Shown here piece by piece: positions 15,821 through 63,791 of a DNA stretch of 64,000 nucleotides; position 1 is the stretch's first letter; every line of letters starts with the position of its first letter. Below the pieces are notes generated by a model. The model was not told the DNA's origin, ran no database searches, and saw nothing but the letters and a program-made list of their open reading frames with translations. The position numbers were made by a program, and so were the translations under genes. The stretch lies in sequence record LR745206.1; one strand, given 5' to 3'.

Positions 15821-16105
15821 ATGTTTAATAAAAACAGTGTGGATAGAAATCATATTCTCACTTTTCTAAATTATAGAGAAAGGGGTGGGGTTTCAATAAC
15901 TTGTACTTGTGGTAAGGAGATTATAACATTAGATGATTTTGAAATATCTGATGGTAGAATGCACAATGACCAACATACTGTTAATATTGAACCAATCACA
16001 GGTAAATTTATCCCATTTCAACTAACCGAAGTTTACTACAATGATGTTGTTTTACATATAGCATCAATTGAAAGAAACGATAAAATCAATAAAATAATAA
16101 AATAA
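15821..16105 (+). CDS. small protein with CxC motif and C-terminal tag
   Basis: ITCTCGKE, ends ERNDKINKIIK. Confidence 0.65.
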   Translation: MFNKNSVDRNHILTFLNYRERGGVSITCTCGKEIITLDDFEISDGRMHNDQHTVNIEPITGKFIPFQLTEVYYNDVVLHIASIERNDKINKIIK

Positions 16106-26258: not shown

Positions 26259-26438
26259 ATGAAAACATCTAAGATACATATTGGTACAATAACTAAAGAT
26301 CAAATTCTTACATCAAATAGGAAGATATCTAGAGAGATTGAATTGGAAAATTCAATTGGGTGGGTGTCTATGAATAAAGTTCATAAGTCTAAGAAAACAT
26401 ACACAAGAAAACCTAAATACAAAGAAACCTACTCTTAA
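26259..26438 (+). CDS. small basic protein (possible ArfA-like ribosome rescue factor)
   Basis: Start ATG 26259, C-terminal VHKSKKTYTRKPKYK. Confidence 0.45.
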   Translation: MKTSKIHIGTITKDQILTSNRKISREIELENSIGWVSMNKVHKSKKTYTRKPKYKETYS

Positions 26439-26635
26439 TTGAATAGGTTTTTTATTTTCTTTTTTCTTGATTCCACTTTCCCGTCTTTTAGATAATCACT
26501 ATATCTTATATTTTTATTTAAATTTTCACATAAGTAATCACAATAAGCACTTTGTAGATTCAAATTTTCAGATATATATTCAGAATAAGATATATTCTTT
26601 TCTAGGCTTTCGGCTATATAATCCTCATAATTCAT
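26435..26635 (-). CDS. small 14-residue-repeat protein with C-terminal tag
   Basis: Start ATG 26635. Y-x-[DE]-Y-[IL]-x-E-[SN]-L repeats, ends [11 protein letters not shown]. Confidence 0.65.
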   Translation of the reverse strand: MNYEDYIAESLEKNISYSEYISENLNLQSAYCDYLCENLNKNIRYSDYLKDGKVESRKKKIKNLFN

Positions 26636-26831
26636 AAATATTTTTAATTTTTTTCTTTCTACTACCAGACCTATCAGTCCAAACATCAGAATGGAAGGTT
26701 AATTGCATCCATTTGTTATTTTGATAAATATAATTCACACAATCAATAGTATTATAATAAATATCACCTTCTATTGGTTCTGATGGTACAGAAGTTGAAA
26801 CACTTAACTGATATTTAAATGGATCTATCAC
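26625..26831 (-). CDS. small protein with tail-fibre-like motif and C-terminal tag
   Basis: [13 protein letters not shown]...YIYQNNKW, ends [12 protein letters not shown]. Confidence 0.6.
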
Positions 26832-27910
26832 ACCTCAAAGTTTTTAGATTTTTTAAGCTTCTCAAGTAGATATTTTTCATCCATTGAAATGTTTTGTGGT
26901 ATTTTAACATTAACAACAACAAAAAGATCACCAAGACCTAAGTTTATATCAGGAATACCTTTACCTGAAACACGTATTGTCTTACCGTGTTGTGTTCCAA
27001 CATCAATAGTTATTGGTAATTCACCATGTGGTGTTCTTACTTTAAGATGAGCACCTAAAATAGCATCAACTACTGATATATCCTTTTCAACAATCAAGTT
27101 ATTACCATCTCTCTTAAAGTAAAATTCTCTTATTTCATCTATCATTATATGTAAATCACCAGGAACACCATCTCTAATATTATTTCCATAACTTCTCATA
27201 TTGAGTTGCATTCCATTAGAAACTCCTTTTGGTATATCAACCTCCACAACCTCTTCTTTAACATTAGTACCTGATCCATGGCAAACACCACATTTGTTTA
27301 ATATTTGTTTACCAGTTCCTTGACAATCACTACAATGAGCTTGTTGTCTTATTTGACCGAATGCTGTATTTTGTACAACTATTCTTTGACCAGTACCATT
27401 ACAAGGTAGACAATCCTTTACATCAGTTCCACCTTTACCAGAACAACTATTACAAGAATCTTGTCTTTTATATTTTATCTTTTTAGTAGTTCCGTTTAAT
27501 ATTTCTTCAATGGATAAAGATACTTTTATTCTTAAATCAGATCCTCTTTTCTGCCTTTTCTGTTGTCCATATTTCTGACCAAATGCACCACCAAAAACAT
27601 CACCAAACTGACTGAATATATCTTCCATATTAAACCCATGACCATATCCACCAGCACCACCATTACTAAATGGATTACCTTGTCCAAATGGACTACCACC
27701 AGTTCCGAATCTGTCATAATTCTCTCTCTTATCTTTTGAAGATAAAGTATCATAAGCCTCCGCTGCTTCCTTAAATTTAGATTCTGCTTCTGCATTATCT
27801 GGATTTTTATCTGGGTGATATTGCATTGCTTTTTTTCGATAAGCCTTTTTAATCTGTTCCTCAGATGCTTTCCTATCTACTCCTAATATGTCATAATAAT
27901 CTTTCGCCAT
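26828..27910 (-). CDS. dnaJ: chaperone DnaJ
   Basis: J-domain with HPD, G/F region, four CxxCxGxG repeats, C-terminal domain. Confidence 0.95.
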
Positions 27911-28242
27911 TATCTTAATATCTTTGTTAATTTTATTTCTCTATATATTTGTTTAGTTGTATCTGTTAACTTTATATACACATATCTATTATAAACTATA
28001 ACAAACTCACGCTCACCATTTATCGGTGATAACATTGTTCTGTAATTCATAATAGGCATTTCATCAACTATTTCACAAAATATATCCTCAACATTTTCAA
28101 TTTTACAATCTTCTATCATTGATAACCTCTCACAAAAATAATTCATAAATGGTGTTGAGGTTTCTATAACTTGGTTAAGTAATTTATCGGTCTTAAAACT
28201 ATCAGGAGCCCATTCTGATATTTCAACATACCAATCAATCAC
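27910..28242 (-). CDS. hypothetical protein with C-terminal tag
   Basis: Ends [11 protein letters not shown]. Confidence 0.65.
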
Positions 28243-46111: not shown

Positions 46112-48034
46112 ATGAATCTATTAAACACCATTAAAAAAGATTTTACTCAATCTGAAAAGGATATTTCGATACAAGACTACTTAAAATTATGTAAAGAAGA
46201 TAAAAAAATATATGCAACACCGGCTGAACGTGTTTTAGACGTTATTGGTGAAGCAGAGATGGTTGATACAAAATCGGATGAAAGATTAAGTAGAATATAC
46301 TCTAATCGAATAATTAAAAGATATAAAACCTTCTCAGATTTCTATGGAATGGAAGATACAATCGAACAAATCGTATCCTTTTTCAGACATGCATCACAAG
46401 GACTCGAAGAAAAGAAACAAATTCTTTATCTATTGGGACCAGTAGGTGGTGGTAAATCATCATTAGCCGAAAGACTTAAACAATTAATAGAGAAAAGTCA
46501 TATTTATGTCCTTGTTGCTGATGGTGTGGTGTCACCAGTTTGGGAAAACCCATTAGGATTATTTTCAAATTATAGATCTGAATTGGAAGATGAATATGGT
46601 ATCTTAAAAAGATACATACCATCTTGTCCTTCACCTTGGGCTACTAAGAGATTAGCAGAGTTTGGTGGTGATATTTCCAAATTCACAGTAAGAAGAATTA
46701 AAATGTCTATTCAATCACAAATTGGTATCTCTAAAACAGAGCCAGGTGATGAGAATAACCAAGATATATCAGCACTTGTTGGTAAAATTGATATACGTAA
46801 ATTAGCTGAGTATCCACAAAATGATGCTGATGCTTATAACTACTCAGGAGCACTTTGTAGAGCAAATCAAGGACTTATGGAGTTTGTTGAGATGTTCAAA
46901 GCCCCGATTAAAATGTTAAATCCACTTTTAACTGCGACACAAGAAGGTAACTATAATGGTACTGAAAATTTACCAGCTATTCCTTTCCAAGGTATAATTT
47001 TGGCTCACTCAAATGAAAGCGAGTGGGAATCATTTTCTAATGATAGAAAGAATGAAGCTTTCTTAGATAGGGTTTATATTGTAAGAGTTCCTTATTGTCT
47101 TAGAATAGATGAGGAGGTTCAAATTTACGAAAAATTATTACAAAGTTCTTCATTATCCGAATCACCTTGTGCACCACAAACATTGGACTTATTAGCTCAA
47201 TTTTGTATAATGACAAGAATGAAAGATCCAGAAAATTCAATACTATATTCTAAAATGAGAATTTATAATGGTGAGAATTTGAAAGAATCTGACCCAAAAG
47301 CTAAATCTCTACAAGAGTATAAAGATAATGCTGGTATAACAGAAGGGATGGATGGTGTATCAACAAGATTCGCATTTAAAGTTCTTTCTAAGGTTTTTAA
47401 TCACGATACAGAAGAAGTTGCTGCTAATCCAGTTCATTTATTTTATGTTTTAGAACAAGAAATAATAAAAGCTCAATTACCTAGAGATGTTGAAGAATAT
47501 TATCTAAATATTCTAAAATCAACAATAACTACTAGATATGCTGATTTTATCGGAGATGAAATACAAAAAGCTTATGTTGATTCATATCAAGAATATGGTC
47601 AAAATCTATTTGAGAGATATATTACTTATGCTGACCATTGGTGTCAAGATAATGATTATCGTGATCCAGAAACAGGTCAACAGTTTGATAGACAAGCACT
47701 TAATGAAGAGCTTGAGAAAATTGAGAAACCAGCTGGTATTGCAAATCCTAAAGATTTCAGAAATGATGTTGTTCAATTTTATTTAAGACATAAAGCTAAA
47801 AATAGTAAAGCACCATCTTGGGATTCTTATGAGAAAATTAAAAATGTTATAGAAAAAAGAATATTCTCTAAAACAGAAGATCTTATTCCTGTTATATCAT
47901 TCACTAGTAAAGCGTCTAAGGATGATGAACATAAACATTCAGAATTTGTTAGTAGAATGAAGAAAAGAGGATATACTAATAAACAAATTCAATTATTAAC
48001 TGATTGGTATCTAAGAGTTAGAAAATCCAGTTAA
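46112..48034 (+). CDS. prkA: PrkA/YeaG family AAA+ serine kinase/ATPase
   Basis: GPVGGGKS, KTEPGDENNQDIS, ANQGLMEFVEMFKAPIK, AHSNESEW, GMDGVSTRF. Confidence 0.95.
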   Translation: MNLLNTIKKDFTQSEKDISIQDYLKLCKEDKKIYATPAERVLDVIGEAEMVDTKSDERLSRIYSNRIIKRYKTFSDFYGMEDTIEQIVSFFRHASQGLEEKKQILYLLGPVGGGKSSLAERLKQLIEKSHIYVLVADGVVSPVWENPLGLFSNYRSELEDEYGILKRYIPSCPSPWATKRLAEFGGDISKFTVRRIKMSIQSQIGISKTEPGDENNQDISALVGKIDIRKLAEYPQNDADAYNYSGALCRANQGLMEFVEMFKAPIKMLNPLLTATQEGNYNGTENLPAIPFQGIILAHSNESEWESFSNDRKNEAFLDRVYIVRVPYCLRIDEEVQIYEKLLQSSSLSESPCAPQTLDLLAQFCIMTRMKDPENSILYSKMRIYNGENLKESDPKAKSLQEYKDNAGITEGMDGVSTRFAFKVLSKVFNHDTEEVAANPVHLFYVLEQEIIKAQLPRDVEEYYLNILKSTITTRYADFIGDEIQKAYVDSYQEYGQNLFERYITYADHWCQDNDYRDPETGQQFDRQALNEELEKIEKPAGIANPKDFRNDVVQFYLRHKAKNSKAPSWDSYEKIKNVIEKRIFSKTEDLIPVISFTSKASKDDEHKHSEFVSRMKKRGYTNKQIQLLTDWYLRVRKSS

Positions 48035-48105
48035 GAGAATGGCGATCTCATTTAGATTATCCAGGTTTATAACCCCAGGTATTTGGGGGTATCCTGATGA
48101 CTTTA
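48035..48105 (+). other. GC-rich structured intergenic element
   Basis: GAGA/TCTC hairpin, then CAGG..ACCCC/GGGGGT..CCTG extended hairpin, between prkA and yeaH. Confidence 0.35.
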
Positions 48106-48156
48106 GTATTAAGCAAAAAATTGCGTTAAGAAAATCAAAAATTAAGAAAATATTCA

Positions 48157-49419
48157 ATGTCAATAAATATAGTAGATAGAAGAAAGAATACTAAAGGGAA
48201 ATCCTCTGAGAATCGTCAGAGGTTCCTTAAACGCGTTGAAGGTCAAATTAAAAAGGCATTACCGGATATTATAAAGGGTACTAATATTAAAGATATTACA
48301 TCATCTAAAGATAAAGTTAAGGTTCCAATAAAAGGAATAAAAGAACCACAATTTACATATGATAAAGATAGTGGTGATAAGAAAAATGTACATCCTGGTA
48401 ATAAGGAATTTACGGAAGGTGATAAAATAAAAAAGCCAGATGATGGTAAAGGTAAGGGAGGTCGAAAAGGATCTAATGATCCAGCTACATCCGAAGATGA
48501 TTTTACTATATCAATAAGTAGAGAAGAATTTCTTGATTATTTTTTCCAAGATTTGGAATTACCAGATATGGTAAAAAAACATTTAGACTCAATAGTTGAT
48601 TTCAAACAAAAGAGAGCAGGTTATTCAAACCAAGGAACTCCAAATAGATTAAATGTTGTTAGATCTTATAAAAACTCTATGGCTCGTAGAATGGCTACAG
48701 GTATATTCTTCGATAAAAGAATTAAAGAGATAGAAGAAAGTCTTAAAGATGATAAACTATCAGATGTTGATAGAATAATACTTGAAAAAGAATTAGATAA
48801 GTTCAAAAAAATGAAGCTATCTGTTTCTTTTATGGAAGAGGTTGATTTACAATATAATAATTTTGATAAAGTAGCTATACCAACTACATCAGCGGTAATG
48901 TTTTGTATAATGGATATTTCTGGATCAATGGGTGAAAAAGAAAAAGATATATCTAAAAGATTCTTTATGTTATTATATATGTTTTTAACCAAACAATATG
49001 AAAGAATTGAGATAGTTTTTATAAAACATCACACTCAAGCCAGTGAGGTTTCTGAGGAAGATTTTTTTAATTCAAAGGAATCAGGTGGGACAGTTGTTGC
49101 ACCAGCTCTTGAGTTAATGAGAGAAATAATTAAAGAAAGATATTCAAAAAGTTGGAATATTTATGCAGCTCAGGCATCCGATGGTGATGTTTGGAATAAA
49201 TCAGATGCTGATGATTGTTATAATCTATTAAATGGTGAGATATTAAATGATATTCAATATATGGTTTATATTGAAGTTTGTAGAGAAAATGATGGTGATT
49301 TGTGGAATAATTATAGATCTTTATCAGAGAGTAGAAAGAATTTTGAGGTTGGAAAAATATCAGATGTTAGTCAAATATGGCAAGTGTTTCAAGACTTCTT
49401 TAAAAAGAAATCAATATAA
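48157..49419 (+). CDS. yeaH: YeaH/YhbH family vWA-domain protein
   Basis: IVDRR...NRQRF, PGNKEF, LELPDM, CIMDISGSM, SGGTVVAPAL, QASDGD. Confidence 0.93.
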   Translation: MSINIVDRRKNTKGKSSENRQRFLKRVEGQIKKALPDIIKGTNIKDITSSKDKVKVPIKGIKEPQFTYDKDSGDKKNVHPGNKEFTEGDKIKKPDDGKGKGGRKGSNDPATSEDDFTISISREEFLDYFFQDLELPDMVKKHLDSIVDFKQKRAGYSNQGTPNRLNVVRSYKNSMARRMATGIFFDKRIKEIEESLKDDKLSDVDRIILEKELDKFKKMKLSVSFMEEVDLQYNNFDKVAIPTTSAVMFCIMDISGSMGEKEKDISKRFFMLLYMFLTKQYERIEIVFIKHHTQASEVSEEDFFNSKESGGTVVAPALELMREIIKERYSKSWNIYAAQASDGDVWNKSDADDCYNLLNGEILNDIQYMVYIEVCRENDGDLWNNYRSLSESRKNFEVGKISDVSQIWQVFQDFFKKKSI

Positions 49420-49420
49420 T

Positions 49421-50920
49421 ATGAATAAAGAAGAATTAAAGAAAATATTCAGTAAATCAGATTGGGATAACGATACGATAATTCAAGCTAATGATATTGT
49501 ATCAAGAATAGCTTCTGAATATCTTGGACTTGATACATATCCAAATCAATTTGAAATTATATCATCAGAACAGATGTTAGATGCTTATTCATTGATTGGA
49601 TTACCATTATCTTACAACCATTGGAAATTTGGAAAAGATTTCGTTATAAACGAGAATCGATATAAAAAGGGTAGAATGGGTTTAGCATATGAGTTGGTAA
49701 TTAATTCAAATCCTTGTATATCATACAATATGGAAGATAACACAACCTGTTTGATGTTATTAGTATTGGCACATGCTGCTTATGGACATAATCACTTTTT
49801 CAAAAATAATTATCTATTTAAACAATGGACTCAAGCTGACTCTATAATAGATTATATGTTATTTGCTAAGAAATTTATTGCTGAGTGTGAAGAAAAATAT
49901 GGATATGAAGAGGTTGAAATGGTTTTAGATTCTTGTCATGCATTAATGAATTATGGGGTTGATAAGTATAAAAAACCAAGAAAACTATCACCTATTGAGG
50001 AACATAGTAGATTGAAGAAGAAGATTGAGGATGATAGAATTCTTTTAAATGATATTTGGAGAACAATTCCTGATAAGAAAGATAAAAGGTCTAAAAGAAC
50101 TAGATTCCCATCTCAACCAGAGGAGAATATACTTTATTTTATAGAGAAGAATTCACCTAAATTAAAAGAATGGCAACGTGAAATTGTTAGAATAGTTAGA
50201 AAGATATCTCAATATTTTTACCCACAAGGACAAAGTAAAGTTATTAATGAAGGTTGTGCTACATTCTCACATTTTGAAATAATAAACAAGATGTATGATG
50301 AGGGATATTTGGATGGTGGCTTTATGTTGGAGTTTATGCACCACCATTCTAATGTTGTTAATCAACCAGGATTTGATTCTAAATATTATTCGGGATTAAA
50401 CCCATACACATTGGGATTTAATATATTCAAAGATTTGAAGAGAATGTCATTAGAACCAACAAAAGAAGATTTAGCATGGTTTCCTAATATAGCAGGAAAA
50501 GGCAATTGGCAAGAAACATTTAGATATATTGTTGAGAACTTCAAAGATGAAACCTTTGTTTTACAATATCTTTCACCTAAAGTGATGAGGGATATGAAAT
50601 TATTTGAAATAAGTGATGAGGAAGGAAGTAAACATTATGAAGTAACTTCTATACATAATGATAGAGGTTATAAAAAAGTTAGACAATCACTTTCAGAATC
50701 ATATAATAGAAGCAGATATGTTCCGGATATACAAGTTTATAAAGTAGATGTTTTTGGTACAAGATCATTAACACTTGAATATACACCAATAAACAATAGA
50801 GATTTGGATTTAAGTGATATTGATAATGTTTTACCACATGTTAAATATTTATGGGGATTTCCTGTAAGAATGGTAAGTCGTGAAGATGGTAAGCTTGTTA
50901 ATATATCATCAATAGATTAA
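49421..50920 (+). CDS. spoVR: SpoVR/YcgB family protein
   Basis: Start ATG 49421. GLDTYPNQFE, YNHWKFGK, LAYELVIN, AHAAYGHNHFF, NEGCAT, NPYTLG. Confidence 0.93.
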   Translation: MNKEELKKIFSKSDWDNDTIIQANDIVSRIASEYLGLDTYPNQFEIISSEQMLDAYSLIGLPLSYNHWKFGKDFVINENRYKKGRMGLAYELVINSNPCISYNMEDNTTCLMLLVLAHAAYGHNHFFKNNYLFKQWTQADSIIDYMLFAKKFIAECEEKYGYEEVEMVLDSCHALMNYGVDKYKKPRKLSPIEEHSRLKKKIEDDRILLNDIWRTIPDKKDKRSKRTRFPSQPEENILYFIEKNSPKLKEWQREIVRIVRKISQYFYPQGQSKVINEGCATFSHFEIINKMYDEGYLDGGFMLEFMHHHSNVVNQPGFDSKYYSGLNPYTLGFNIFKDLKRMSLEPTKEDLAWFPNIAGKGNWQETFRYIVENFKDETFVLQYLSPKVMRDMKLFEISDEEGSKHYEVTSIHNDRGYKKVRQSLSESYNRSRYVPDIQVYKVDVFGTRSLTLEYTPINNRDLDLSDIDNVLPHVKYLWGFPVRMVSREDGKLVNISSID

Positions 50921-50927
50921 ATGAAAA

Positions 50928-51140
50928 TTAAATACCGAGTGATTTTATTTTTAGGTGTCTATCTAATAGTTTATAATCCTCTTTACCCATTGATAGTGTT
51001 ATCTTTTTATCTTTATAATGATCACCTTTTATATAGTCTATAAAAACTGAGTTTGTATAGTAAGTAACTTCTAATATTTCAACATCATCAAAGAAGCTAA
51101 TATCAATATCATATAATTCACCATATATTCTAACAGTCAT
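50928..51140 (-). CDS. small protein with C-terminal tag
   Basis: Ends DRHLKIKSLGI. Confidence 0.6.
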   Translation of the reverse strand: MTVRIYGELYDIDISFFDDVEILEVTYYTNSVFIDYIKGDHYKDKKITLSMGKEDYKLLDRHLKIKSLGI

Positions 51141-51546
51141 ATTTTATAATCTCCACACCAGCTTCTTTTAGAAACTCCAAACCAGAAGCATCTTTATATT
51201 CTTTTATATAAACTAATCGTTTTATACCAGATTGTAAAATCAATTTAGAGCAGTCTTTACAAGGTGAATGTGTTTGATATAAAGTACCACCTTCACAAGA
51301 ATGTCCATGTCTAGCACATTTAAGAATAGCGTTAGCTTCTCCATGTATTACATACCAATTAGTGGTACCATCTTCTATCTCACAAGCGTTATCGAACCCT
51401 GTGGGTGTACCATTATATCCATCTGATATAATCATACCATTCTTAACTATAAGAGCTCCTACTTGTTTCCTATTACAATGTGAGAGTGTCGCCCACTCTT
51501 TAGCCATATTCAAATAGGTTCTATCGTATCTTTCTTGTTTATCCAC
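51130..51546 (-). CDS. dCMP deaminase (ComEB-like)
   Basis: Probable GTG start. VGALIV, GYNGTP, HGEANAI, PCKDC. Confidence 0.9.
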   Translation of the reverse strand: MDKQERYDRTYLNMAKEWATLSHCNRKQVGALIVKNGMIISDGYNGTPTGFDNACEIEDGTTNWYVIHGEANAILKCARHGHSCEGGTLYQTHSPCKDCSKLILQSGIKRLVYIKEYKDASGLEFLKEAGVEIIKYDC

Positions 51547-51694
51547 CAAAAATATTTTTAATTTTATATTTTCTAAATTCCTCTTTTGTTAATTGTAGTA
51601 TGTTTTTAAGAGCCCACTCAACACTAACCGCATTAGTACCACTCATAGCACTAAACATCTCTGCTCTCATTTTTGCTTTACTGATACTTCTCAT
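51539..51694 (-). CDS. 51-aa protein with portal-like segment and C-terminal tag
   Basis: MRSISKAKMRAEMFSAMSGTNAVSVEWALKNILQLTKEEFRKYKIKNIFGG. Fills the nusG-deaminase gap. Not in the ORF track. Confidence 0.6.
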   Translation of the reverse strand: MRSISKAKMRAEMFSAMSGTNAVSVEWALKNILQLTKEEFRKYKIKNIFGG

Positions 51695-51696
51695 TT

Positions 51697-52233
51697 TTAC
51701 AATTTATCTATTTGTAAAGAACTAACCTCTACTGGTGTTTTTCTACCAAAAATAGAAATACTTAGTTTAACTTTTTGACCTGATATATCATCAATAACAC
51801 CTTTCATTGTAGAGAAAGGTCCGTCAGTTATTCTAACTTCTTCACCTATTATGAATGGTGTTTCAACTTCAACTTCTTCACAGGATTTTTGATGACCTAT
51901 CTTATCGACTTCATTATCACGCATTGGTTTGATATCACCAGATCTAGATGTTAGAAATCCTGTTGCTCCATTACAACCCTTTAGGAAGTATTTCAATTCA
52001 CCAACAGCATTTGTCTCAACAAAAATATATCCTGGGTACATTATCTTTTCTCTTTTGACTTTCTTATTATTTTTTAAATAAAAAGTAGTCTCCATAGGAG
52101 CAAGAACTTGTCCAATTTTATTTTCTAAATCAGGATCTTTCTTTATTTTCTCTACAACACTTCTTTCTTTATTACCTTGTGTTCTAACAATATACCAATT
52201 CATTTCACTTTTTGTTTGATTTTCCATAATCAT
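51697..52233 (-). CDS. nusG: transcription termination/antitermination factor NusG
   Basis: WYIVRT..NKE, YPGYIFVE, KOW GEEVRITDGPF, ISIFGRKTPVEV. Confidence 0.92.
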   Translation of the reverse strand: MIMENQTKSEMNWYIVRTQGNKERSVVEKIKKDPDLENKIGQVLAPMETTFYLKNNKKVKREKIMYPGYIFVETNAVGELKYFLKGCNGATGFLTSRSGDIKPMRDNEVDKIGHQKSCEEVEVETPFIIGEEVRITDGPFSTMKGVIDDISGQKVKLSISIFGRKTPVEVSSLQIDKL

Positions 52234-53641: not shown

Positions 53642-54031
53642 TTATTTCTTTATAACTTCATCTATCTTTCTGTCTCTCTCTAATACAATGAATTTACTTT
53701 CTAAGAATTTTTCTATTTCTTTTGGTAATGAAACTTGCTGCTTTTTTAACTCATCATAATAAGGTTTACCTAAAACATTAATTATTGATATAATCATAGC
53801 AACATTAGAATCCAACCAACCTTCCACTTCTAGATCTTCCCCTAAAATATGGTAGGTTGTTTTTTGAGGTTGTATTGAATACCCAACAAAATTACCAGAA
53901 GAGTTTGATACAGTTATATTTGATCCACTTGAAATTGTTACATTTGATCCAGTTCCATAGATAGAGCTTGTTGTGCCTGTGTAGATAGAGCTTGTGTGTA
54001 CATTACTACCATTTATATTTACGAATCCCAT
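53642..54031 (-). CDS. hypothetical protein, S/T-rich N-terminus, C-terminal tag
   Basis: Ends ERDRKIDEVIKK. Confidence 0.65.
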   Translation of the reverse strand: MGFVNINGSNVHTSSIYTGTTSSIYGTGSNVTISSGSNITVSNSSGNFVGYSIQPQKTTYHILGEDLEVEGWLDSNVAMIISIINVLGKPYYDELKKQQVSLPKEIEKFLESKFIVLERDRKIDEVIKK

Positions 54032-54930: not shown

Positions 54931-55368
54931 TTAATCTAAAACCGAATTTAACTTGATATCTCTTTTATATGAATTTATTACACTTTCTAATGATTGTGTA
55001 TTTATATCCTTATCCAACATAGTTTTAATATTCTGTATTGAAAAACTACAATCTATATATGATAGATCATTTCCATCCCAAGAAAATGGTGATGTTTTAA
55101 ATAGTGTATTCTTTACTTGTAAAATATCAAATCTTATCACATCACCAACTCTATTTTGATGTGATATGATAAGTATATCAGTATTCACTATATCATCATA
55201 CCCAACATCAGGCATATCTTGAAATTTACAGTTTATTATATCATTTACAATTTCATATCTCTCAATATGTGCTGTTTTAGTCTCACCAGATTTTGTTATG
55301 AATCTAGCATCATAGAGACTTGTATAAATTGGCTCAATCGATTTATGTGCAAAGTGTGGTAATCCCAT
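54931..55368 (-). CDS. tail-tube-like protein with C-terminal tag
   Basis: MGLPHF...EPIYTSLYDARF...QNRVGDVIR, ends KRDIKLNSVLD. Confidence 0.5.
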   Translation of the reverse strand: MGLPHFAHKSIEPIYTSLYDARFITKSGETKTAHIERYEIVNDIINCKFQDMPDVGYDDIVNTDILIISHQNRVGDVIRFDILQVKNTLFKTSPFSWDGNDLSYIDCSFSIQNIKTMLDKDINTQSLESVINSYKRDIKLNSVLD

Positions 55369-57236: not shown

Positions 57237-57264
57237 TATATATAGTAAAATAAAAACTTTGTTT
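57237..57264 (-). promoter_or_regulatory. putative middle promoter AAACAA-N16-TATATA
   Basis: Upstream of the topoisomerase large subunit, identical architecture to 59019..59046. Confidence 0.5.
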
Positions 57265-57508
57265 AAGAGTTTAACAATTCTGATATCTTTCTATCTCTGT
57301 CTATACCCCTTAACACACCTACTATATTTGATTCATATCCAGAATAAATTGGGTGAAGATAATCTTCCTCATCAACATAAGATAATTGCCAATGATTTGG
57401 ATAATTTGGCTTTTCCCACAATATATGTTTACCATTGAAAGTTGGTTTAGACCACTCATCAAACTCTTCGCAATAAATAAAACCATATTTCTCAGGAAAT
57501 TCACTCAT
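57263..57508 (-). CDS. small protein with C-terminal tag
   Basis: Ends DRDRKISELLNS. Confidence 0.6.
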   Translation of the reverse strand: MSEFPEKYGFIYCEEFDEWSKPTFNGKHILWEKPNYPNHWQLSYVDEEDYLHPIYSGYESNIVGVLRGIDRDRKISELLNS

Positions 57509-63002: not shown

Positions 63003-63164
63003 ATGGATAATATAACTACACATAAAGACCCAACAGAAAACTACACACCAGTAGGTCAAACATTCTGTAAGGGTAAATGCGATACGAAAGCTATAAGAAC
63101 GAAAGAAGGTCTTGTTGTTCTTTGTGATGGATGTAAAAGGGTTGTTATTGATAATAGAGATTAG
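63003..63164 (+). CDS. 53-aa Cys-rich (possible zinc-binding) protein
   Basis: FCKGKC...LCDGC. Not in the ORF track. Confidence 0.55.
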   Translation: MDNITTHKDPTENYTPVGQTFCKGKCDTKAIRTKEGLVVLCDGCKRVVIDNRD

Positions 63165-63529
63165 TGGAATATTTACCAGGTATAATAGATGAAAGTCTTC
63201 AAAAATTAAATTATTTTGAAATATTAAATGATTTTAATGTACCATTGTACCCTAATAGATTCGATGATGATATTTCAAACAATGATATTACGGATTCAAT
63301 AGAATTTAAAGGTGGTGAAATATTAATTCTTAGATGGTTTAAACCAAAAACAACAAGAACACTTTATAGTTTTGTGGTTGGATATTATAAATCAGATAAG
63401 TACCATGAGGTTAAAAGAGAATGTCCTATGAGTATGGATTTTGTTTCTATCAATACTGCTATACTTAATAATATAACCAATTCATTTGTAAGAGAATTGA
63501 AGATAGATTCTATATTATATGGTTTGTAG
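63164..63529 (+). CDS. hypothetical protein with C-terminal tag
   Basis: Ends VRELKIDSILYGL. Confidence 0.65.
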   Translation: MEYLPGIIDESLQKLNYFEILNDFNVPLYPNRFDDDISNNDITDSIEFKGGEILILRWFKPKTTRTLYSFVVGYYKSDKYHEVKRECPMSMDFVSINTAILNNITNSFVRELKIDSILYGL

Positions 63530-63791
63530 ATGTAAGTTAAATTTTATGATGAAGGATTTTCACTTTATTGATGGTGAAATCTATGATTATGATTATGATA
63601 GTCATGAAGAAACTGGAATTTTGATTTTTTATATAAAAGGTAGAAGATTATCATTTTCAACAGGTCTTCCATTTGTTGATGGTAAGCTTCCGATGGTAGA
63701 AGATAAATTCCGGAAGTATTTCGATGATTTACAATATTTAAGAGAAGAAAAATTAAAACAATTATTTGATGATATTAGCGAAAACAGTTAA
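63519..63791 (+). CDS. hypothetical protein with C-terminal tag
   Basis: Ends LREEKLKQLFDDISENS. Confidence 0.6.
   Translation: MVCRCKLNFMMKDFHFIDGEIYDYDYDSHEETGILIFYIKGRRLSFSTGLPFVDGKLPMVEDKFRKYFDDLQYLREEKLKQLFDDISENS

Follow-up and report, generated by a model that had tools for sequence, protein, structure and literature searches.

Does the 51-codon open reading frame found between nusG and a dCMP deaminase gene in an uncultured huge phage encode a protein, and if so, why does that protein resemble one small part of the phage portal? To answer this question we analyzed a window of 64,000 nucleotides, bases 434001-498000 of LR745206.1 (100% identity), an unannotated phage genome of 634,780 bp. 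The window has no N and about 28% G+C, and we infer that the genome belongs to the huge-phage set of PMC7162821. The first-pass annotation had proposed, from the letters alone, that an ORF absent from the annotation track fits exactly between the two genes, that it resembles the late C-terminal segment of T4-like portals and ends in RKYKIKNIF, and that it is a second structural-protein mimic with the same tag, possibly aimed at portal-sensing Avs/STAND defence NTPases. The observation was confirmed. The ORF has an ATG start and a TAA stop and encodes MRSISKAKMRAEMFSAMSGTNAVSVEWALKNILQLTKEEFRKYKIKNIFGG, in which both strings reported by that annotation are present, although its absence from a track could not be judged since the public record carries no annotation. 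It starts 2 nt after the nusG stop and overlaps the TTG/GTG start of the deaminase gene by 8-11 nt. The features discussed here are collected in Table 1.

Table 1. Position and supporting evidence of the features discussed (window coordinates unless marked genome).
Position	Strand	Feature	Evidence
51539-51694 (genome 485539-485694)	-	51-aa ORF, free-standing portal crown-domain homologue with C-terminal tag	Orthologues P0002, P0003, P0005, P0007 and L024:4556-4675
51572-51694	-	Residues 1-41, crown-like part	Aligns to T4 gp20 457-499
51548-51574	-	Residues 41-49, RKYKIKNIF, C-terminal tag	Lies in the predicted third helix (37-49)
51697-52233	-	nusG-like gene directly upstream on the same strand	Pfam NusG E 1.2e-16, KOW E 4.5e-4; PHROG transcription antiterminator E 4.5e-28
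51130-51549	-	dCMP deaminase gene directly downstream, its start overlapping the end of the ORF	Pfam dCMP_cyt_deam_1 E 5e-23; PHROG dCMP deaminase E 1e-55
26435-26686	-	ORF B (83 aa; probable start M18 at 26635), 3.5 copies of the 14-residue scaffold repeat plus tag RKKKIKNLF	51-55% identical to the repeats of the 707-aa head protease/scaffold protein; BLASTP E 1e-14 to 2e-19; phmmer E 8.5e-38
26625-26831	-	ORF A (68 aa), tail-fibre-type motif (EGDIYYNT...NNKW) plus tag RKKKIKNIY, immediately downstream of dnaJ	tblastn finds 70 phage records, the annotated listed ones tail fibre or minor structural proteins, best E 7e-4; PHROG hits E 3e-5
48039-48179	+	ORF C (46 aa) between prkA and the DUF444 gene, tag RKSKIKKIF; nothing found that it copies	Orthologues with the tag in L002 and L018; no family hit
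53642-54031	-	129-aa protein with the common 'class-1' form of the tag (…LERDRKIDEVIKK)	Genome-wide census; motif at the end of a long C-terminal helix (104-128) in the AF2 model; L018 orthologue lacks the motif
15821-16105	+	Other class-1 tag	Genome-wide census
27910-28242	-	Other class-1 tag	Genome-wide census
54931-55368	-	Other class-1 tag	Genome-wide census
57263-57508	-	Other class-1 tag	Genome-wide census
63164-63529	+	Other class-1 tag	Genome-wide census
63519-63791	+	Other class-1 tag	Genome-wide census
genome 193127-194860		The phage's own portal gene	Portal_T4 194.9 bits, E 3e-57
genome 198546-200669		707-aa head protease/scaffold protein	PHROG head maturation protease E 4e-30
genome 255010-255237		Tagged mini-ORF copying the capsid-protein C-terminus	Pfam Gp23 E 2e-4; own capsid protein E 3.5e-5
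genome 189488-189649		Tagged mini-ORF, weaker case, protease	E 0.02-0.07
genome 83154-83393		Tagged mini-ORF, weaker case, RNR 'APTGS..SSGI'-like stretch with the PolB 'DFASLYPS' motif	E 0.011 and 0.002

To determine whether the ORF is a gene, relatives were sought in collections of 5.8 and 1.8 billion proteins. Four small relatives of 39-57 aa were found: P0002 (90% identity over the 39 aa called; 86-88% over the full 51-codon ORF), P0003 (58%), P0005 (54%) and P0007 (53%). Two giant proteins (P0004 and P0006) were rejected as false positives, since they sum many weak matches to FN3-like repeats. All four small relatives lie directly upstream of a dCMP deaminase gene on contigs syntenic with the window, with gyrase B, FEN and nusG on one side and PrkA, DUF444 and SpoVR on the other. 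Among the related loci examined (numbered with the prefix L), the same adjacency was seen in L002, L016, L017 and L018-L022. Contigs of this set come from lakes, for example ERZ23495616, ERZ23498365 and SRR10072857. A sixth, more distant copy of 40 aa, lacking the third helix and the tag, lies in L024. The ORF is intact in six lineages, the five others having 35-88% identity to it. Against the closest relative, dN/dS was 0.24 in frame compared to 3.0 and 2.2 in the other two frames, whereas the dCMP deaminase gave 0.05. The ORF evolves fast, with 42-57% identity where the deaminase keeps 84-87% (84-97% over the whole set). Even so, E12, M17, S24, W27 and L33 are invariant in all six sequences, and A28, N31, K37, R41, K44, I45, I48 and F49 are also invariant in the five tagged ones. 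The ORF is tightly packed on the same strand as its neighbours with an A-rich leader like other genes of this genome. No Shine-Dalgarno site was found, in agreement with the other genes of this genome, only 4% of which use one, and a scan for promoters and terminators around the locus was no better than shuffles.

Other searches gave nothing. A tblastn search of 50,697 phage records returned only the ORF itself and non-significant hits (E 4-8) to an Erwinia jumbo-phage virion protein, with no hit to portals. A PDB sequence search gave nothing relevant, PHROGs gave no hit for the window ORF, and scans of IMG/VR and JGI metagenome contigs with family patterns found no relatives. In the related 642-kb phage LR756502, nusG is followed by an HNH gene and the ORF is absent; this phage is also not among the listed close dCMP-deaminase hits. 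The nearest deaminase relatives are gut and crAss-like phage contigs, which suggests, but does not prove, a Bacteroidota-type host.

The likeness to portals was then examined with profiles, a check that the first-pass annotation had itself named. The portal motif on which that annotation relied is correct: T4 gp20 reads S482-H-R-T-A-M-K-D-I-L-Q-M-T-D-E-E and the ORF reads S24-V-E-W-A-L-K-N-I-L-Q-L-T-K-E-E. Portal_T4 (PF07230) was the only hit among 24,736 Pfam models (E 0.048, residues 4-42 on profile positions 385-425 of 433), but at 12.8 bits it falls below the gathering threshold of 22.9. BLASTP aligned residues 23-42 with T4 gp20 481-500 (E 0.002), and the phage's own portal aligned at 483-497. 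A profile of the family compared by hhalign with a profile of 30 T4-like portals gave 92.5% probability and E 4.9e-7, rising to 94% and 1.4e-7 when the L024 sequence was included. The real score was 44.4, whereas 200 column shuffles gave 13.6 +/- 2.9 with a maximum of 29.6, indicating that the similarity is more than chance. The family HMM picked the region around 450-500 as the best domain in 29 of the 30 portals, and P0007 gave a PHROG portal hit at E 0.17.

The structure predictions pointed to the same domain. The AF2 model has three helices (6-19, 25-31 and 37-49), with only moderate confidence (pLDDT 68), and 11 of the 15 hits reported by Foldseek among 350,542 PDB chains were T4 gp20 or SPP1 gp6 portal chains (TMq of the best matches 0.53-0.61), although their E-values (2-9) are not significant on their own. 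The T4 crown comprises residues 451-524 and is described as three helices, alpha10-12 (PMC4493910). The ORF is thus best described as a free-standing crown domain rather than an arbitrary fragment. It is not a portal in the full sense, since at 51 aa it lacks the clip-stem-wing-crown architecture of about 500 aa that forms the dodecameric channel. Recent duplication of the phage's own portal was rejected: identity is 53% over 15 aa, the own portal ranks only 10th of 30, so that the ORF is no closer to it than to other T4-like portals, and third codon positions between the two are saturated. The relationship is therefore old and is kept at the peptide level.

The tag was analyzed in the window and then in the whole genome. 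The strict form RK.KIK[NK][IL][FY] occurs four times in the six-frame translation of the window, at 26467(-), 26660(-), 48129(+) and 51574(-), all within 8 codons of a stop, and was not found in 100 Markov-2 simulations. It is a variant of a genome-wide C-terminal motif, h-R-D-x-K-I-x-x-I-L, the broader form of which (h-R-[DENK]-x-K-[IL]-x-x-[ILV]-[LIF]) ends 88 ORFs, with 88 matches in the last 17 residues of stop-to-stop segments and 27 everywhere else, an 18-fold enrichment. The motif is carried by about 8% of the putative genes and by 15% of those of 60-150 aa, but almost never by large proteins, and it is absent from a 30-kb T4 sample. The RK..IF variant marks the tiniest ORFs (35-83 aa). 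Pfam scans of six larger tagged proteins found no known domain that could explain the tag. The AF2 model of the 129-aa example was made from an alignment that left out one row from an annotated-record locus. A DNA-level element, or a by-product of A-rich translation leaders, was rejected as the origin of the tag: codons differ synonymously among copies, a hydrophobic residue at -1 that was not selected for is nevertheless enriched, and 18 of 76 tagged genes have an opposite-strand neighbour, much like all genes.

Is the ORF alone in pairing a piece of a core protein with the tag? Besides ORF A, ORF B and the tagged mini-ORFs at genome loci in Table 1, ORFs of 59-62 aa in L016, L017, L018 and L024 match Pfam Gp23 positions 222-260 (best E 4e-5); this family has 20 clusters, and every sequence read (19) carries the tag. 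An 80-aa ORF in L024 matches Gp23 positions 168-194 (E 1e-4), and a 48-aa ORF in L017 matches the head protease (PHROG E 1e-4). Taken together, the capsid-protein segments match Gp23 at E 4e-5, 8e-4, 2e-4 and 1e-4. In L017 and L024 the capsid-protein, protease and portal mimics sit in that order downstream of nusG, and L016 and L018 keep the capsid-protein and portal mimics in the same order, an HNH endonuclease gene being sometimes inserted there, whereas the window lineage keeps only the portal mimic at that place. Only mimics of conserved segments could be recognized, so that ascertainment bias in this series is possible. The protease case at genome 189488-189649 and the PolB/RNR case are the weaker ones.

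The interpretation given in the first-pass annotation was therefore partly supported. The ORF is a conserved gene, it resembles the crown part of T4-like portals, and it belongs to a series of small ORFs that pair a piece of a structural protein with the same tag. On the other hand, nothing in these data shows inhibition of portal-sensing Avs/STAND proteins, and the tag is not special to the mimics. What the analysis shows is that a clade of huge (Mahaphage-type) phages carries a real, conserved protein-coding gene for a free-standing homologue of the portal crown domain, with a lineage-wide C-terminal motif in its predicted third helix, and that it is one of a set of tagged mini-proteins, each copying a conserved module of a core phage protein. 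The mechanism is inferred. That the protein is a functional crown-domain homologue is very likely. The conservation of portal-like residues in a free 51-mer argues that it still makes crown-like contacts, and we favour, with low confidence, a 'microprotein' model in which it would compete for whatever normally contacts the portal crown; that it works by competitive mimicry at all is at best about as likely as not. The most likely single target would be the portal/prohead-initiation complex, where it would cap or join crown-crown contacts of portal subunits and so time or modulate head assembly, but that the partner is this machinery rather than a host sensor or a chaperone is doubtful. The shared tag would supply a second function common to many small proteins of this phage, such as docking to a hub protein, localization or turnover.

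Several points do not fit this model well. There are no expression, binding or phenotype data from this uncultured phage. A crown mimic that poisons assembly would also hit the phage's own T4-like portal, which has the same motif, and in P22 and HSV the scaffold binds the portal wing, not the crown (PMC13386823, PMC9320234). The gene lies among replication and transcription genes rather than head genes. The capsid-protein mimics copy segments that would be buried in the HK97-type fold, which fits poorly with simple interface capping, and the weaker PolB/RNR and tail-fibre mimics are not explained by a head-assembly role. The L024 orthologue lacks the third helix and the tag.

Of the alternatives, the one that survives best, although unlikely, is that the protein descends from a portal crown but that its present function is set by the C-terminal motif, as for the roughly 88 other tagged small proteins, and would have nothing to do with portals (hub docking, membrane or compartment targeting, or a degron). 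In favour of this view, the tag is the part shared with other ORFs, since the family HMM matches other tagged ORFs only through positions about 30-49, it is invariant in the five tagged family members, and it is enriched at C-termini. However, the crown-like residues S24, W27 and L33 (all six sequences) and A28 and N31 (the five tagged ones) are invariant across 35-57% identical orthologues and coincide with conserved portal positions, indicating that the portal-like part is itself under selection; the L024 orthologue keeps the crown part and has lost the tag; and the hydrophobic moment of the tag is low (0.12-0.34).

The immune decoy idea, in a generalized form, is somewhat less likely still. 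Here the mini-protein would be made early and would occupy a host sensor of the portal (Avs4/Avs11-type STAND, or another sensor of a linear motif) without activating it, and the sister mini-proteins would do the same for sensors of capsid protein, protease, tail fibre or polymerase. The ORF sits in an early-type operon with nusG, FEN/RNase H, gyrase B and dCMP deaminase, which is typical of counter-defence genes, and the mimicked proteins (capsid protein, portal, tail protein, DNA polymerase) overlap the classes reported as Avs triggers (PMC13581612). This is the one idea that also covers the non-head mimics, the PolB/RNR mimic among them. Competitive decoys exist, such as DSAD1 against DSR2 (PMC11087589), and short head-protein peptides can be immune ligands, for example Gol/Lit (cited in PMC13581612). 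In contrast, Avs proteins are reported to recognize whole folds through extended interfaces (PMC13581612), and the 41-residue crown is a small part of a portal; Avs4 is reported to contact mainly clip, stem and wing (Gao et al. 2022).

A leader or upstream ORF that mainly couples or regulates translation of the deaminase gene is very unlikely. The ORF does lie directly upstream of dCMP deaminase in five lineages, stop and start overlap in four of them, and the tag codons form the A-rich leader of the deaminase gene. However, the peptide sequence and not just the reading frame is conserved, L016 has a 135-nt gap, the L024 orthologue is followed by a DOT1-like methyltransferase gene with no deaminase, and tags are not tied to a downstream same-strand gene. 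The gap in L016 and the missing deaminase in L024 also weaken a strict functional link to dCMP deaminase. Finally, a decaying portal fragment or a chance likeness, which the weak single-sequence signals, the absence from LR756502 and the lack of relatives in IMG/VR or JGI contigs might have suggested, is largely refuted by the six intact lineages with in-frame purifying selection, the profile match that survives a shuffle control, the structure-based hits and the motif retained despite saturated third codon positions.

A broader reading, which we regard as unlikely but not excluded, is that huge phages of this clade encode a dedicated set of tagged mini-proteins, partly arrayed downstream of nusG, reproducing the portal crown, three capsid-protein segments, head protease, scaffold repeats, tail-fibre motif and perhaps PolB/RNR motifs, and acting together as a mimicry system. 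They could be decoys for host pattern-recognition immunity or proteostasis factors that see these modules, or programmed competitors that control head assembly, and the shared motif would be a sorting, docking or turnover signal used by about 8% of the proteome. If these mini-proteins work by mimicry, they would be the first case known to us in which a phage encodes stand-alone copies of conserved modules of its own core proteins. If they are decoys, this bears on how phages escape receptors that sense conserved folds; if they control assembly, on how a capsid for more than 600 kb of DNA is built. Separately, a C-terminal motif shared by about 88 otherwise unrelated small proteins looks like a sorting or docking signal and gives a concrete, testable handle on the 'dark' small proteome of huge phages; the 51-aa protein, the capsid-protein mimics and the tag peptide are all small enough for direct biochemical tests. 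The family is in neither Pfam nor PHROGs, and literature searches, which cover open-access text only, found no description of stand-alone crown domains, of tagged core-protein mini-ORFs or of this C-terminal motif.

Among known systems, the tag can be likened, by analogy only, to C-terminal docking or targeting helices such as the PIP box (Qxx[ILM]xx[FY][FY]) and the MinD-type membrane-targeting tail, with which it shares the C-terminal position, a hydrophobic triad at i, i+3 and i+4, and its occurrence on many unrelated proteins. It has no Q, most copies have no aromatic pair, and the motif is not in Pfam or PHROGs. Hydrophobic moments gave no support to an amphipathic membrane helix, being 0.12-0.40 for the tags against 0.27 for the MinD tail, values that do not discriminate. 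The Gol peptide of gp23 (Lit) and Stp (PrrC) of T4 show that 26-30 residues of, or beside, a head protein can be the ligand of a host defence protein, but Gol is part of gp23 itself and not a separate gene, and the capsid-protein segments copied here (Gp23 positions 168-194, 222-260 and 308-356) are not the Gol region. As with DSAD1 against DSR2, a small phage protein could compete with a structural protein for an immune sensor, and the early-gene context fits; the present ORF is a sequence homologue of part of the trigger, whereas no sequence likeness between DSAD1 and the tail tube protein is known to us. The partial duplicates T4 alt.-1/alt.-2 are likewise small ORFs derived from part of a larger virion protein gene, but they lie next to the parent gene and are annotated as an old duplication of the first part of alt with a stop codon introduced, whereas the ORFs described here are dispersed, ancient, conserved and tagged.

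MicroProteins or small interfering peptides, such as plant LITTLE ZIPPER and animal Id proteins, are small single-module homologues of larger proteins that titrate their partners. The ORF is likewise small, keeps one module homologous to a larger multi-domain protein and is encoded separately; the concept, however, comes from eukaryotic transcription factors, heteromer formation is here only hypothetical, and these mini-proteins carry an extra shared C-terminal motif. The closest comparison is with the crown domain of T4-like portals itself, the C-terminal part of Portal_T4, with which the ORF shares a profile match over 41 columns, three short helices (predicted for the ORF) and the S..(W/T)A.K.IL.(L/M) signature. 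It differs in standing alone with no clip, stem or wing, in being encoded about 290 kb from the phage's own portal gene, in scoring below the Pfam gathering threshold, and in a third helix that is basic and carries the lineage tag, whereas gp20 alpha12 is acidic.

The C-terminal tag motif was examined over the whole LR745206.1 genome, where the form h-R-[DEN]-x-K-[IL]-x-x-[IL]-[LI] is located 0-8 residues before the stop on about 88 ORFs. This corresponds to 15% of putative genes of 60-150 aa and to an 18-fold enrichment at C-termini. The motif is also present in the related sequences L001, L002 and L018, whereas it is absent from a 30-kb sample of T4. From sequence alone, it looks like a sorting, docking or turnover signal. 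A 219-aa ORF outside the window carries the tag internally (…QYRDYKINKILG at residues 107-118), which could represent two genes read as one or a rare internal copy. The coordinates of these and the other features are listed in the table.

Coordinates of tagged ORFs and other features of the phage genome and related sequences
Sequence	Coordinates	Strand	Feature
Window	15821-16105	+	ORF with C-terminal motif
Window	27910-28242	-	ORF with C-terminal motif
Window	53642-54031	-	ORF with C-terminal motif
Window	54931-55368	-	ORF with C-terminal motif
Window	57263-57508	-	ORF with C-terminal motif
Window	63164-63529	+	ORF with C-terminal motif
Window	63519-63791	+	ORF with C-terminal motif
Window	26435-26831	-	Two overlapping tagged mini-ORFs, A and B
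Window	26828-27910		dnaJ homologue
Window	48039-48179	+	Tagged ORF, 46 aa
Window	46112-50920	+	PrkA / DUF444 (YeaH) / SpoVR gene triad
L016	278-1048		HNH-type endonuclease gene
L024	3252-4019		HNH-type endonuclease gene
L001	1959-2762		HNH-type endonuclease gene
LR745206.1 (outside window)	83154-83393	+	Tagged ORF with RNR-like and PolB-like stretches, 79 aa
LR745206.1 (outside window)	232803-234344	+	Family-B DNA polymerase ORF, 513 aa
LR745206.1 (outside window)	198546-200669	+	Head maturation protease with tandem repeats
LR745206.1 (outside window)	338501-339160	+	ORF with internal tag, 219 aa

Two overlapping tagged mini-ORFs were found just downstream of a phage dnaJ homologue, whose J-domain with its HPD motif was identified by visual inspection. 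The first (ORF A) carries a tail-fibre motif and the second (ORF B) carries scaffold repeats, and the start of ORF B (M18) lies inside the tag codons of ORF A. The head maturation protease of this phage (PHROG E 4e-30) is fused to about 12 tandem 14-residue repeats (NIAYSEYIAENLDK) and an acidic tail. This is presumably a protease-scaffold fusion, and its gene lies between the portal and capsid-protein genes.

A further tagged ORF outside the window joins an RNR-like 'TIKPSGSVS…SGGI' stretch to a PolB motif-A-like 'DFASLYPS' stretch, and matches the phage's own RNR (E 0.011) and PolB (E 0.002). These motifs are classic intein or homing-endonuclease insertion sites. The family-B DNA polymerase ORF of the same genome is itself only 513 aa long and ends about 85 residues after motif A. 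The polymerase gene may be split or interrupted.

The junction downstream of nusG also differs among lineages. In some of them, represented by L016, L024 and L001, an HNH-type endonuclease gene (255-267 aa, …HHVVPYCY…HNFHDV…C..CH, read by eye) is inserted between nusG and the array of mini-ORFs resembling core phage proteins. This gene is not present at that position in the window, suggesting a mobile element at this junction.

The 46-aa tagged ORF is wedged between prkA and the DUF444 (yeaH-like) gene, and is conserved with its tag in L002 and L018 (…LRKSKIKRIFNVNKYSR), although nothing was found that it copies. The PrkA / DUF444 (YeaH) / SpoVR triad, assigned by Pfam, is conserved in relatives. 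Such a stress or sporulation-associated kinase module is unusual in a phage. Over the whole genome, only 4% of long ORFs have an SD-like site, and positions -20 to -9 are 55-63% A. This pattern, which hints at the host, matches the SD-independent initiation known for Bacteroidota.
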